In this document: in pieces, positions 42,728-49,666 of the stretch
Position numbering within the stretch: the first letter of the stretch is position 1
Layout: each line of letters starts with the position of its first letter
Assembly: GCA_033442325.1 (NCBI GenBank)
Contig: JAWQFM010000015.1
Span: 566,318 to 630,317, forward strand
Length of the DNA stretch: 64,000 bases
Direction: 5' to 3'
Origin: Salpingoeca rosetta
Lineage: Eukaryota > Protista > Choanoflagellata
Position numbers and translations under genes: made by a program
Notes under the pieces: generated by a model
Databases searched by the model: none
What the model saw: only the letters and a program-made list of their open reading frames with translations
What the model was told of the DNA's origin: nothing

Positions 42728-44833
42728 ATGGCGTTGACAACCCCGCGCCCTGTCACGGCATTCACGGGCCTCATCGCGCTTAGCGCCATGGTCTTTGCCA
42801 TCACCTTTGCCCTCGTCACCCCCGTCACCCCCGTCATGGGCGCCGCGTGCTCCAGCTACAACAACTCGTACGACTGCGACGTCAGCCCCGACCTGTGCGC
42901 GTGGAACTACCACTGCGATTCCTGCGACCAAATGCCGTGCGAGTGGGGCTACACGGAGGAATACTGCCCAGAGTGGTGCGTGTGGGACACGGAGATTGGC
43001 GCCTGCCACCCGCCTGGCGAGTTCCCCAAGTGCTCGCAGATCCAGTACTCCCAGCCCTCCTGTGAGGCTGCCAGCCCAGAGTGCGTCTGGGACAACGTCT
43101 ACAGCTTCTGCCTGCCCACCCTCATCTACTGCCGCTGGCTCGACGACTACACCAGCTGCACCAACGACCCCAAGTGCACCTTCTACGAGGGCGTCTGCTA
43201 CCCGAGCCACCGCGTGCCCACGTGCAAGGAGATTGGCAGCCTCGACTTCTGCATTGCCGCCGGCTGCGAGTGGGAGCCATCTTCGGGATGGTGCATCGAC
43301 CGGGAAAACGAGGACGACTGGTGCTTCAACATCGCCTGGAACGAGGTCATGTGCAACTTCTACCCAGAGTGCACGTGGGACGCGTCGAGCGGCTGTCTTC
43401 CCGGCAGCATTTGCGGCAACCAGAGCAAGATACTGCTGCCCTTCACCGTCTTCCCCTTCCAGTACAACGCCAGCTACGAGGACTCCATCCCCGTGCGGCG
43501 CGTGCGTCCGACGATTGGTGGCATCGGCCTCCCCGACGGCGTCTTCTTCGGCAACAACATCACGTACGAGTTCACCCGTGGCCTCGTCTTGGATGGTGGC
43601 TGCCTTGGCTGGGCTCCCAGCGCACCTCTCACCTTCACCGATGGCGGTAAGCAATGCGTTCTTGATGTGTGTGGGCGTGCTCGTGTGTTGTCTGTGGACA
43701 CGTCTGCAAAAGGCACTGCTTCAATCCACCAGTCTGCCGCTGTCTTCATGTCTCTCCTGCTGTTCTCACGTGTGGCTCCCCCCCCCTCTTCTTGTCTGTT
43801 TCCTGCCTTTGTGGCATGGTGGGTTTTCTTCCCAACACAGCGACCTTCTACATGAGGGTGCTCCACAAGGACTTTGAGTCAACCACCCCAGAAGGTGAGC
43901 AAGGGGGCAAGCGTTTGCCTGTGTGATTGTGTGGCTTTGTGAAGTGTGTGATGTGGTGTGATGTGACACAGCGTTTTGGGGCATTTGAATTTTGCCGCCG
44001 TTTTGCCATGTGGATGAAATGTTTTTGGATTTGGTGGTTGGGTGTTCTCTTCCTGGGTGCTGGATGCCACTTCCATTTGATCGTTTTGATCGTTTTGCCT
44101 GAGCACGTACACTCACTCGCCTTTGCTACCCCCTTGTTCCGCGATTGGTTTGCAGTGCTGTTTGACATTTCTTCCAACGACAACGCCATCGTCTTGTCCA
44201 AGGGGTGAGTTTGTGTGTGTGTGTGTATGTGTGTGTGTGTGTGTGTAAATCGCTTGCGACATGCGCATACAGAGCCAAATTGTCACTCACACATCCAGTT
44301 GCTTTGTGTATGTGTAATTTGTCTCGCCACGTGGTCAGGCCCGGCAACACGCTGCAGCTGTTTGCTAGGCAGAACGCCACAATCACCGCCGTTGGAGCTG
44401 TGGCTGACGTCCTCGCCAATGTGACGGAGATCAGCCTTGTGTAAGTCACCAAGTGTGGTGTGTGTGGTGTGTGTGTGTGTGTGTGCGTATGTGTAGATTC
44501 ATGTTTGTCATGCTGCAACACATGCGCATGCACGTTCATGGGTGCACATGTGCACATGTGAGTGTTTTTTTTCTGGGACTCAACTTCCACCTTTTGTGTT
44601 TTTCTTACCTTTGCTTTGAATACTGCCATTGTGACCATTTCTCTACAGCGTGTCCGAGGCCCACGTCATGGTGTACGTTGCCAGCTCCCTCGTCATTCAT
44701 GGCCCTTGGAACGGCGGCATGAACTACATGTCTGGCACGTTCCGTGTCGGTTGCAGCGCCACCAACGACAACGTCTGGCGCGGCGACCTCCAGCTCCTGG
44801 TCATCCAGGTGTGTGTGTGTGTGTGTGTTTGGC

Positions 44834-44875
<42 letters not shown>

Positions 44876-45601
44876 GCCATGCGTGTGTTTGGCCATGCGT
44901 GTGTGCCGTGACGCATGCGTTTCGTTTGTTATGCACGCCCCTTGAGGGCTTTCTGCCTCACCACCTTACCCCTTGATGACTCTTCCCCCCCCCCCTCTAA
45001 ACTACAAATGCACACTGCCATCGACCTCAACAGGGCGGCATCGCTCCCGCCGTGCAGAACATGACGCAGTACCTGCCACCAGATCCGCCAAAGGCCACCA
45101 CGACCGCCATCCCAACAGAAGAGGTCACCTTCTCCGGCTGGGCAAGCGGCAGTGGCAGCGGCAGCGGTAGCGGCAGCGGTGGCAGCGTGTAGGCGTGCGT
45201 GCACCCGCACCCGCGCTGGACTCGAGGATGTGCCTGCAGGCACGCAGGATGCATTGGCCACTTGTGTTTGCCTGCTTGCTTGTGTACTTGAGTCGTTGAT
45301 GTTCCTTAAGCTCTGTTCTTCGAGGGTCTTGGTGTCGATTTGGCTATGGTTGCAGTCGTTGTGTTTCTTCCGGTCGGTGATGTTGTGCACTCCTGCTCTC
45401 TTGTTTCCTTTCCTCTCGCACATGCACCTGCACGCGCGCCCGCACGCACACACACACACACGTGTTTTCCCCTCCCCTCCCTCTTGTTTTCAACACAGGC
45501 TCTCGATGTTGGCCAGTGAGCATTCACACCGCTATGTGCACGACCACAGTCGCGTGCTGTTGGTGACACTGTGTCTGGCGTGGGCTGTTGTTGTGCTGTG
45601 A
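42728..45601 (+). CDS. Cell-surface Cys-rich repeat protein with beta-rich (LamG/ConA-like?) domain, (Ser-Gly)6 tract and hydrophobic GPI-like C-terminus
   Basis: Signal peptide; six C-x6-9-C-x3-6-C-x-[WF]-x4-6-C repeats in exon 42728-43646; in-phase exons at about 43841, 44156, 44339, 44649 and 45034. Splicing 45189-45498 (gtaggc...caacacag) adds LSMLASEH...RVLLVTLCLAWAVVVL*. Without that splice there is a TAG at 45190-45192. Confidence 0.7.
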
Positions 45602-46296
45602 TTTAGTCTTGTCATCTCCCTCCCCCCCCCACCTCTTTGCTGTGCAAAGTACATTTTGTGGTCGTGTGGTCTTTCCGGTTTTTTGGATCCACAAGTGGAC
45701 TTCCCCTTGTGCCCACACCACGTGCCATGTGTCATGAGACACGTGCCATGTGTCGTGTGCCGTGTGCTTCTTCCGCTTGTGCTCCGTGACCCCCTCACCG
45801 CACTCTTACGTTAGTTCAGGCGCGTTCTTGTTCCTCTTCCCCCCCCCCCTTTGCAGCGTGCGTGCAAGCAGCGAGATGGTTTTGGTGACGTGTGGTCTTC
45901 GCGTTGCGTTGTCCTGTTGTTCTGGCGTGCTCTCGAGTGTTGCGTTGTGCCAACGCTGCCTCGTTTTGTTTTGTCACGCCACGCAACGGGCACACCAACA
46001 GTGCCCACCATCACCTCGCTTCCCCTGTTTTCCTCCTCCCCCTCTTTCCTTTCTATTCCGCGCTCCCCTCTTCATGTCTCGTCCGGTGAATTTGATGTCT
46101 GCTTCCGTTTTTGTCGTCGCACTACCTGCTGACCCATGTCTCCCTCTTCTCCCCCTCTCCCTCTCTCCTTATTCTTTTTCCCCTCTTTGCCCTTTGCTTT
46201 GACCTAGTTGATGCAATGAAAAAACTCGTAACCCGACAACAACCTTGGAAACGCACAAAGCATTCAGCACCGCCGTCACCACAACACACACACACA

Positions 46297-46328
<32 letters not shown>

Positions 46329-46338
46329 CGCACGCACG

Positions 46339-46405
<67 letters not shown>

Positions 46406-46897
46406 GCACAGTTGAAGTTGTCACTGGTTGGGGGAAGATGCGGGGGTTGGGCGGGGGCGAAACAAGCATGGGTGCTGTTTTCATCACCCACCACACGCGC
46501 TGATGTTTATGGCGAGAGACGCTGAGGGAAACAAACAAGCAAACACATGCACAAGACACACACACACACACACACACACACATACGCACGCACATACGCA
46601 CACACAGCAATGGTGTGACACTGACGGTTAATGAAATGGGACAATCATCCAAGATGCAACAACTGGCAACCAAACACACACACACACACAAGACACACAC
46701 ACACACACACAACACACACACATGCAAATACACGGTGTTCAGAGAGCGTACACGTTGTGGACAACGAACCAACGGCTCCAAGCGAAAGGCAACAAAACGC
46801 AAAGAAACGGGGCTGTGGAAAAACACAAAGGGCCGTCCCATAGGACGCAAGAACAACAAGAAGAAAAGTGACACGCCACACTCCACACAGGCTCAGT

Positions 46898-46932
<35 letters not shown>

Positions 46933-47048
46933 CAGCTGCATGATTGCAGTGCATTCAACTGCGGACAACGCAACGAATAACAGCAGCAGCAGCAAGGCAA
47001 CAGCAGTGGATGGAGTAGGAGTGACGACAAGAGGGGCGAGCATGGGCA

Positions 47049-47254
47049 TCATCGGTGGTTGGGGCTGACGGCCTCTTCCTCCAGATGTTTGAACTGGACG
47101 GTGAACGTCTGCTCCACCTCCCGCCACACACGCGGGTCAAACACAATGTATGTGCCGTGCTGCTGCGTTGCACTCGTCTGGTACTGGTACTTGTCGCTCT
47201 TCTTCAGCCACACCCGCTTCACCCGATGGAACCGCCAGCTCCGCCCAAACCTGC

Positions 47255-47286
<32 letters not shown>

Positions 47287-47296
47287 GGTGAGCACA

Positions 47297-47369
<73 letters not shown>

Positions 47370-47558
47370 ACATCACGCACAACACGCGGCACAGGGACGA
47401 GCGTGCGAGCACTGACAGGTGATTTGCGGCGGAGAGCTGGAGAATGTCGCCAGGAAGGTTGTAGAACATGTAGAACAGCGTCTCGTCAGGAAACCGGTTG
47501 ATCCCCTGGTGAAACAACGCGGTGCACATGGACGCGTGTACGCATGTGTGTGTGTGTG

Positions 47559-47608
<50 letters not shown>

Positions 47609-48586
47609 CAAGGTGAGGGCAAGACTTGGACTCCTCCTGCACGCATCACACCCGCTGCCGCAACAATGGAGTCACGCCATGTCATGTCTGACCTGGGAGA
47701 CGTGTGTGACGGGGAAGTCGCGGTAGCTCGACGGCAGACGGCCAAGCACGGGCGGCACTTGTTGCTGTTGTCCGCACACGAGGTACACGTCAAGCACATG
47801 CACACATACAACCAGGCGCACCCACAGACAGGCACAGGTTGTGAGCAAGCACAAGACAAGACGGGCCGTTGCAGAAAGCACGAGAGCAAGCGCAAACGGC
47901 ACGCGAAAGCGCGGAAAGGCGAGTACCCATCACAATCATCCTCCACATCACCACCATCACAATCAACGACCATCCACACATCCACATCACCACCATCACA
48001 TTCAACCGCCATACCGCGTTCCACGGGGTGAGCAAGTGGGGAAAGGCCTCGCCCTCGTGACGGCGGAGAATGGGTTCAGACGCGTCCAGTCCGCGATGCA
48101 GCCGCCGCAGCTTCGCGTCGTCCGTGTACACCATCTGCAGTAGCCCTTCAAGCCCGTACTCGTGCCCGGGTAGCAGCTCTGGAGTGTTGGGAGTGCGTGC
48201 GCGCGCGCGCGCGCGTGTGTGTGTGTGTTGAGTGAGCGAGAGGTAAGCGGGCAATGGCAATGCCATTTCCGTTGGACGACAGGTGGGAACAACGAGGAGG
48301 GACAATGCATCAAGACAGAAACACCACCAGCGCGTTCGCCTGAGGTGTCATACACTCACGTTTTGACGCCTCCTTCAGCGCCGTATGCTTTTCCAAACCA
48401 AGGTCCCACGCTGTCAGGTTGGGTCAAGCACGAGGCATGATACACAGTGAGAACCACGCTGCAATCGTAAAACAGAGCACAGCACAGCAGCAGAGCACAT
48501 CATAGGAAACCACCGCACACCACACAGGGGAGCAAATTACGAACTTGGAACGGTCTTGATGGTGGCTCCCTTTAGTATCGAGCCGC

Positions 48587-48666
<80 letters not shown>

Positions 48667-49666
48667 TGCTGCTGCTGTTGTTGTTGAGGCTGTGGTGGTG
48701 GCGCTTGTGATGACGGCGGCAATTGCGGCTGCTGCTGCTGTTGTGCAGGTCTCTGTTGCTGTTGTTGCTGTTGTTGCTGCTGTTGCTGCTGCTGCCTGGG
48801 GGCCTGGGAGGAGAGGGAGGGGAAGTCGTCTGCGTGTATGCTGTAGCCTGTTGGTGGCGGCGCCGGCACGCGACCCGCCGCTACGCCGTTGTACGACGCA
48901 CTCGACACGGGATGCGACGACGACGCTGCGCATAGCGGTGGTGGTGATGGCGGTGAGGGCAATGGAGGTGATTACAGCGATGGTGGTGGTGGAAAGCAGG
49001 AGGGTGGGGCAGCGAGGTGGTGAGGTGGGGTGGGGTTGGCATGAAGTTGGGACGAAGTGAGACTCAACCCCGTCAAAAGACAAAGAACCATGGCCCATCC
49101 ACACACAGACAGAGCACGTGGCCGAGGAGCAACAACAGCCGATGGTACACTGGCTGATACTTACGCATGCTCTGCTGCGGCGCTCTCTGCTGCTGTTGCT
49201 GCTGTTGCTGTTGCAACTGCGGTGGCGGTTGGCTGTGGGGCGGGTGCTGCTGGGCGACGGCAGACAGCTGCTGTTGCGAGCGCGGGGGCATGGTGGCGGA
49301 AAGGGCCGGAAACCCGGTGGGGTCAAGCATGCTGCCGTGGCCCTTCTGCCCACCGTACGCCTGGTGCAGCGCAGGATAGTTCTGGCGGCGGCAGCCGCGT
49401 TGGTGATGTGGGAAGTGGTGATGTAAGATTGTGGGCGTGGGATGGAGAACACCGGCTGTGAGTTTGGAGGGGGGGGATTCATGGTTGTGGTCGTGGTCGT
49501 CGTGGTGATGGGAATGGACTAGCCCATGCAGGGCACATACATTGCAAACAGGGTGCGAGAATACTTCCACAAGCGCACGACAGCCTCAGACAAAAACATA
49601 CACGCACAACCACGCACCTGCCCGTTCGACATCATCATGCCTCGTTCTGCGTACATGGGAAACCCT

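Follow-up and report, generated by a model that had tools for sequence, protein, structure and literature searches.

A Salpingoeca rosetta gene encoding Cys-rich repeats, a lectin-type fold and an in-frame Ser-Gly run, probably a secreted member of a choanoflagellate protein family

A gene on the plus strand of a 64,000-nucleotide stretch of DNA from the choanoflagellate Salpingoeca rosetta (GenBank assembly GCA_033442325.1, contig JAWQFM010000015.1, positions 566,318 to 630,317; hereafter the window) encodes a protein in which cysteine-rich repeats and a domain of the concanavalin A-like (ConA-like) fold are followed by six Ser-Gly dipeptides, (SG)6. Six exons at positions 42728-45192 of the window are backed by homology or frame, and the predicted product comprises, in this order, a signal peptide, six repeats of four Cys that would be disulfide-rich, a ConA-like jelly roll, a short Pro/Thr linker and a tail, FSGW-A-(SG)6, that is probably disordered. 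The reading towards which we lean, with only modest confidence, is that of a secreted glycoprotein of Cys repeats and lectin fold whose SG tail ends at an in-frame TAG codon. Such a product would be soluble or associated with the extracellular matrix and N-glycosylated, rather than anchored through glycosylphosphatidylinositol (GPI).

Salpingoeca rosetta has been reported to produce chondroitin sulfate and to possess genes of the linker and chondroitin pathways (10.1101/139022; 10.1101/211789). The bacterial chondroitinase EroS triggers mating and has been proposed to act on S. rosetta proteoglycans, and no core protein carrying the chondroitin chains is named in these articles (10.1101/139022; 10.1101/211789). 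The initial annotation of the gene, made from the letters of the sequence, described a candidate core protein of this kind: GPI-anchored, analogous rather than homologous to the glypicans, with the SG run placed just outside the membrane and with EroS as the enzyme possibly acting on it.

The exon structure was derived with single exons or database homologues as queries in the sequence searches, and the genome searched was an assembly of 55.4 Mb in 68 contigs. All exons lie on the plus strand. Exon 1 (42728-43646) opens with the ATG at 42728, ends in phase 1 before the donor GTAAGC at 43647 and aligns with four homologues, P0001-P0004, across 275-292 residues; it contains the signal-peptide-like segment (approximately 42728-42841), six repeats of four Cys and an aromatic residue (42848-43414, residues 41-229) and the first strands of the jelly roll. 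The remainder of this domain is distributed over four short exons. Exon 2 (43841-43894; acceptor CACAG, donor GTGAGC) contributes 18 codons, split codons included, and is the internal exon with the weakest homology support, its length and position matching an 18-residue gap between exons 1 and 3 in the homologue alignment. Exon 3 (44156-44204) encodes LFDISSNDNAIVLSK, aligned with the VVDFPSKNGHSLVV / VFDLSDEDSVVML segment of the homologues P0003 and P0008. Exon 4 (44339-44440) carries two N-glycosylation sequons and the segment starting PGNTLQLFAR, which aligns with a conserved GPGN.L.IFGR segment in all three full-length homologues. The final strands are supplied by exon 5 (44649-44808), which includes FRVGCSATNDN and ends in phase 0; P0002, P0003 and P0008 share its G..R.GCS.T.D motif. 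Translated exons 1, 3, 4 and 5 align to the full-length homologues in order and without overlap, and exons 1-5 as a whole are collinear with them, the FRVGCS.T.D motif included. Exon 6 (45034-45192) encodes the Pro/Thr linker, FSGW, the SG run, GGSV and the TAG, and at its start it shares 46% identity over 26 residues with the C-terminal linker of P0008 (E 2e-5).

Introns in the window are of the eukaryotic GT-AG type and rich in (TG)n. The donors of introns 1-5 of this gene read GTAAGC, GTGAGC, GTGAGT, GTAAGT and GTGTGT, and all acceptors consist of a pyrimidine tract followed by AG. In introns 3, 4 and 5 of the five and in the 3' flank (43647-45033; 45189-46600), (TG)n or (GT)n microsatellites occur and the coding strand is rich in G+T, so that translations of these regions are rich in Cys, Val, Leu and Trp and can mimic hydrophobic tails or transmembrane segments. 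The open reading frame (ORF) of P0001, a Logan contig of 329 amino acids, departs from the family alignment into intron-like sequence at the position of intron 1 (43640-43650), which suggests that this intron position is conserved in another choanoflagellate. The C-ending codon bias annotated for exon 1 was borne out, with a GC content of 0.88 (GC3) and a C content of 0.63 (C3) at third codon positions. A search of the same genome gave no paralogue of exon 1, and the gene appears to be single-copy.

A hydrophobic segment at residues 13-31, approximately, lies within the signal-peptide-like stretch of residues 1-38 that begins at the ATG, and an equivalent segment is kept in all homologues. The annotated signal peptide is retained as a prediction, and these features fit a product of the secretory pathway. 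Seven N-x-S/T sequons, read across the exons, likewise fit a secretory glycoprotein.

Six Cys/Trp repeats had been annotated in the region that follows, and six are present at residues 41-229, with the pattern C-x8-9-C-x3-6-C-x-[W/F]-x4-6-C. The aromatic residue one residue on from the third Cys (C57, C84, C119, C150, C180, C215) is Trp, with Phe in its place in repeat 4. Two additional Cys, C66 and C229, stand outside the pattern, and 25 of the 27 Cys of exon 1 are invariant in a five-sequence alignment (A3). An AlphaFold2 (AF2) model of exon 1 reached a predicted local distance difference test score (pLDDT) of 55, with 70-88 in the middle repeats, and depicts each repeat as a short helix and a hairpin. 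Searches with this region returned no relative of known class: there was no Foldseek match to the model at E<=1e-3 and no family in a Pfam scan of exon 1 at E<=1. The profiles A2 and A3, run against PDB sequences, yielded rows at chance level only, and a protein-atlas feature search gave no usable match. Single repeats superpose over 34-43 residues on small disulfide-rich modules, namely the PSI domains of Semaphorin 2b and integrin beta6 and the C-terminal domain of a trypanosome variant surface glycoprotein, with Z of 2.1-3.6, values which are not significant and provide a lead only. The best PSI superpositions gave Z 2.1-2.2 and Foldseek E of 4-9, and Pfam PF01437 was not matched. The 4-Cys repeat is an unclassified module. 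The same repeat, for which Pfam has no model, accounts for nearly the whole of a Didymoeca costata protein of 852 amino acids (P0006), where it is present in more than 20 copies.

The beta-rich domain, which spans the tail of exon 1 through exon 5, was modelled with AF2 on residues 228-452 of P0003, the homologue from Microstomoeca, with the exons of the S. rosetta gene as alignment rows. The model (pLDDT 62.7, predicted TM-score 0.62) had 385 Foldseek matches in the PDB at E<=1e-3. VIA-align gave Z 16.0 with the carbohydrate-binding domain 5hon_B (root-mean-square deviation 3.5 over 182 residues) and Z of 12.6-14.3 with L-type lectins, galectins and the laminin and Gas6 LG domains. The model of this homologue shows the two-sheet jelly roll, generally of about 180-200 residues, of the ConA-like superfamily, which comprises LamG/Laminin_G_3, the L-type lectins ERGIC-53, VIP36 and Emp47p, the galectins and bacterial carbohydrate-binding modules (Z 12.6-16 over 140-182 residues), and the conserved segments of P0003 align with exons 1-5 of the S. 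rosetta gene. By sequence, however, the domain stays under the Pfam thresholds: Laminin_G_3 reached 18.5 bits (cut-off 27.6), in P0002 only, and single exons had no match; there was no PDB sequence match, and neither sugar- nor calcium-binding residues could be identified. The LamG/pentraxin-like pattern of the initial annotation thus holds at the level of the fold, in the P0003 model, and not at that of sequence; between the two domains, structure searches identified the beta domain as ConA-like and gave no significant match for the Cys-repeat region. The top Foldseek rows were the binding domains of clostridial neurotoxins (botulinum), whose lectin-like subdomain shares the fold only and gives no indication of toxicity; they were set aside as the general lectin-like jelly roll. 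In VIA-align, carbohydrate-binding modules and L-type lectins come out at least as high. In the mechanism we consider, the jelly-roll domain would most plausibly bind a carbohydrate or matrix ligand.

An exhaustive HMMER search returned choanoflagellate or environmental relatives only (E 4e-30 to 3e-13), from Microstomoeca roanoka and Barroeca monosierra (names as in EukProt) and from two environmental forms. A homologous-protein search with exon 1 found none, and one with the family alignment found only P0004 and P0001. The family, as delimited by these searches, appears to be small and has been seen only in choanoflagellates. Its C-termini vary: P0003 has a true transmembrane helix, P0008 no anchor and the S. 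rosetta protein the SG run.

The C-terminal part of exon 6 reads ...PTEEVTFSGWA(SG)6GGSV and then TAG, with FSGW-A-(SG)6 at 45130-45180, FSGW-A-(SG)6-GGSV at 45130-45189 and the (SG)6 run itself at 45145-45180, all in frame. The run lies 20 codons past the P0008-like segment of the same exon. Its frame is fixed because the exon 5/6 junction is in phase 0 and the start of exon 6 resembles the C-terminal region of P0008; the concern that these codons might be translated in another frame is thereby removed. The annotated TEEVTFSGWA-SG stretch is present, its start shifted from 45112, which is a Pro codon, to the Thr codon at 45115, and the Pro/Thr stalk before it exists as a linker of merely about 20 residues.

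Animal xylosyltransferases prefer acceptors of repeated SGxG with acidic and aromatic residues nearby, and (SG)n is readily accepted. With two Glu and aromatic residues in its neighbourhood, the exposed, in-frame (SG)6 would fit this pattern, and the run can be regarded as a candidate acceptor for xylosylation and chondroitin addition, or as merely a flexible linker. The latter possibility, in its full form, holds that slippage of AGY-GGN codons gave rise to the run as a neutral or flexible linker, that it bears no glycosaminoglycan and that the Cys repeats together with the lectin-fold domain account for the entire function of the protein. The run is indeed encoded by an imperfect AGY-GGN hexanucleotide repeat, and it appears specific to the lineage of the S. 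rosetta gene: it is absent from all homologues, the tail of P0003 containing no Ser-Gly and those of P0002 (Barroeca) and P0008 a single one each. The acidic residues near it are just the two Glu, both upstream. Across the genome, (AGYGGN)5 occurs at 13 loci, several of them within Q/H-rich, intracellular-looking proteins in which glycosaminoglycan addition is impossible. The genome-wide matches were 9/15 for (AGYGGN)5 and 160/176 for a mirror-image control pattern; the greater frequency of the control indicates that hexanucleotide coding repeats of other kinds, probably rich in His or in Asp/Gly, are very common. Against such neutrality, the 12 repeat codons show three differences, each of them a synonymous third-position change; this outcome, expected by chance in approximately 1 in 27 cases, suggests that the peptide is maintained and argues mildly for selection. 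Furthermore, SG runs recur beside stalks or membrane anchors in at least three extracellular-type proteins, one of them with the same Cys repeats, and runs of this type suit the animal enzymes, as stated above. The neutral linker is held to be a minority possibility.

The end of the protein determines whether an anchor may be considered. An in-frame TAG at 45190-45192 stands directly behind the SG run and GGSV, and the reading frame most likely ends there. The hydrophobic GPI-like C-terminus of the initial annotation is not established: exon 6 meets the TAG, and the tail requires a putative splice into codons that resemble non-coding sequence. The splice would remove a putative intron 6 (45189-45498, plus strand), with the donor GTAGGC and an acceptor made of a pyrimidine tract and CACAG (AG at 45497-45498), and would join a putative exon 7 (45499-45601, plus strand) encoding a polar, His-rich stretch of 19 residues, a hydrophobic end of 14 residues, LLVTLCLAWAVVVL, and a TGA. 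The GT at 45189 is the only one in the right phase. At position +4 the GTAGGC donor has G, where the confirmed donors have A in four of five cases and T in one.

Codon usage was evaluated with a codon model trained on three unrelated ORFs of the same genome, introns 1-5 serving as the non-coding model. The log-likelihood ratio per codon was between +0.26 and +0.81 in exons 1-6 (+0.80 in exon 6), +0.45 in the hydrophobic signal peptide and at least +0.225 in all in-frame coding windows; stop-free non-coding windows had a mean of 0.00 (standard deviation 0.33), and the held-out transmembrane tail of another S. rosetta gene with an SG run (L007, described below) scored +0.09. Putative exon 7 scored -0.215, and its hydrophobic part alone -0.53; its C3 was 0.24, compared with 0.42-0.64 in the confirmed exons. 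The codon usage of putative exon 7 thus looks non-coding. ORF ends at least as hydrophobic are found on the plus strand in 10 of 560 cases in the window, mostly encoded by (TG)n, and the region 45.2-46.2 kb holds three more hydrophobic stretches of at least 19 residues, of which one shares this frame, within the putative intron, and the remaining two do not. In GPI signals, the spacer between the omega site and the hydrophobic stretch usually measures 5-10 residues. By inspection, small-residue omega triplets are confined to the SG run, at a distance of some 20 residues from the hydrophobic stretch, and candidate omega sites nearer to the tail have Glu/His or Leu at omega+1/+2; judged by these general rules, the omega-site and spacer geometry of the putative tail appears non-canonical.

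The homologues provide a further comparison. Four mRNA contigs of P0008 all reach a TAA eight codons past DGSGFPW, two of them (L002 and L003) spliced at the 5' intron and two (L004 and L005) retaining it, which indicates that P0008 is a secreted protein lacking any anchor and that its terminus corresponds in position to the S. rosetta TAG. When 45-50 kb of the window was searched by tblastn, nothing resembling the P0003 tail, transmembrane and cytoplasmic parts included, was detected, so that a hidden homologous transmembrane exon is unlikely, and no coding-like block was seen on the plus strand at 45190-47150. The next feature downstream lies on the minus strand at 47137-49482, where a NOT2/3/5-type C-terminal segment (...ETLFYMFYNLPGD...) and poly-Q tracts are found; it looks like the 3' part of a CNOT2-like gene that converges on the 3' end of the SG gene.

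Several observations weigh against a secreted product ending at the TAG. The putative donor GT is placed exactly so as to remove that codon, a strong pyrimidine-tract/CACAG acceptor follows 310 nt downstream, and the splice product ends in 14 hydrophobic residues and a stop. The codon test covers 33 codons only, and hydrophobic segments generally score low. The Microstomoeca homologue P0003 is membrane-anchored, through its transmembrane helix and a basic tail, and membrane anchoring may be ancestral. As for the domains, the beta-domain model was made from this homologue and not from the S. rosetta protein, and both AF2 models are only middling (pLDDT 55 and 63). On balance, the extension of the frame by one exon to a hydrophobic GPI-type tail is considered doubtful.

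A further reading is that of a GPI-anchored, glypican-analogous chondroitin sulfate core protein cleaved by EroS. In its favour are the (SG)6 with a nearby EE pair and aromatic residues in the frame of a secretory protein, the splice that is possible on paper with its polar spacer, the membrane-bound P0003, the reported chondroitin production and linker-enzyme genes, the proposed action of EroS on S. rosetta proteoglycans, and the CHGN-family (chondroitin synthase type) sequences found at two loci of the genome. Opposed to it are the codon score of exon 7, lower than that of every coding window, the recurrence of equally hydrophobic ORF ends and stretches, the omega-site geometry, the anchorless P0008, the lack of an SG run in any homologue, and the longer or better-flanked SG runs encoded by other genes of the genome; moreover, no evidence ties the SG gene in particular to EroS. 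Taken together, this reading is very improbable.

Glypicans resemble the predicted protein in that a Cys-rich extracellular region precedes Ser-Gly sites located near the C-terminus, and the glypican-type location of these sites, between a globular domain and an anchor, is found here at the level of the motif only. The hydrophobic C-terminal signal would be shared only under the putative GPI gene model, and that signal is probably not coding. The Cys-rich region is a six-fold 4-Cys repeat, unlike the glypican core with its 14-Cys pattern, a ConA-like domain separates it from the SG run, and Pfam matched the Glypican domain (PF01153) neither in exon 1 nor in the homologues. The annotated glypican-like topology is not supported: its GPI-like tail depends on the putative splice, and among the homologues P0003 has a transmembrane helix and P0008 no anchor. 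Serglycin (PF04360) offers a likeness in its uninterrupted (SG)n adjoining aromatic and acidic residues; this small protein of granules has neither Cys repeats nor a lectin domain. A Pfam match to Serglycin (20.9 bits, cut-off 30) covered only profile positions 82-107, which is the SG repeat, and was dismissed as an effect of low complexity.

Elsewhere in the genome, SG runs that are longer or better flanked by acidic residues are encoded by at least three genes or ORFs of extracellular type. The first, L007 (G000:C2:2427500-2429100, plus strand), combines the same 4-Cys repeats (BLASTP E 2e-4, Cys in register) with a Thr stalk, NE-(SG)6-D, seven tandem mucin-like repeats of 21 residues, each ending in TTTSG, and a clear C-terminal transmembrane helix. 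In comparison with the SG gene, its run lies between Glu and Asp and it has no ConA-like domain; from these features it looks the better candidate for a membrane proteoglycan. The second, L017 (G000:C34:642300-643900, minus strand), has EGF-like Cys, a Thr-rich mucin stretch and (GS)19 between DDLDQYAADNT and GDYTYGY, followed by a LamG-type domain that reaches 20.9 bits with Pfam Laminin_G_3, under threshold; among the runs examined in the genome, its (GS)19 appears the most serglycin-like. The third, L014 (G000:C22:566100-567800, minus strand), is a Thr-rich, mucin-like frame with SDSESVDDSDS-(SG)7-GGVFPF, in which an acidic cluster immediately precedes the run. Neither Xylo_C (PF12529) nor Branch (PF02485) was matched in six-frame searches of the genome; this outcome is taken to be uninformative, since such a search proceeds exon by exon, the Xylo_C control matched no control genome and, according to the literature, the linker enzymes are present.

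Whether soluble or anchored, a genuine choanoflagellate chondroitin sulfate proteoglycan, the cleavage of whose chains by EroS or by endogenous lyases contributes to mating or rosette responses, is an unlikely identity for this protein. If true, the protein would count among the first known core proteins of non-animal proteoglycans. As judged from its frame and motif, the SG gene is a plausible and legitimate core-protein candidate, although neither unique nor the strongest in the genome. A shortlist of core proteins would make the question of the chondroitin carrier in S. rosetta testable; the gene belongs on such a list and not at its top, because L007, L017 and L014 have longer or better acid-flanked runs in extracellular proteins, one of which is clearly membrane-anchored. 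Beyond the SG run, the gene defines a family, seen in choanoflagellates only, in which an unclassified 4-Cys repeat is joined to a ConA-like lectin fold and followed by C-termini that vary between a transmembrane helix, no anchor and an SG run.

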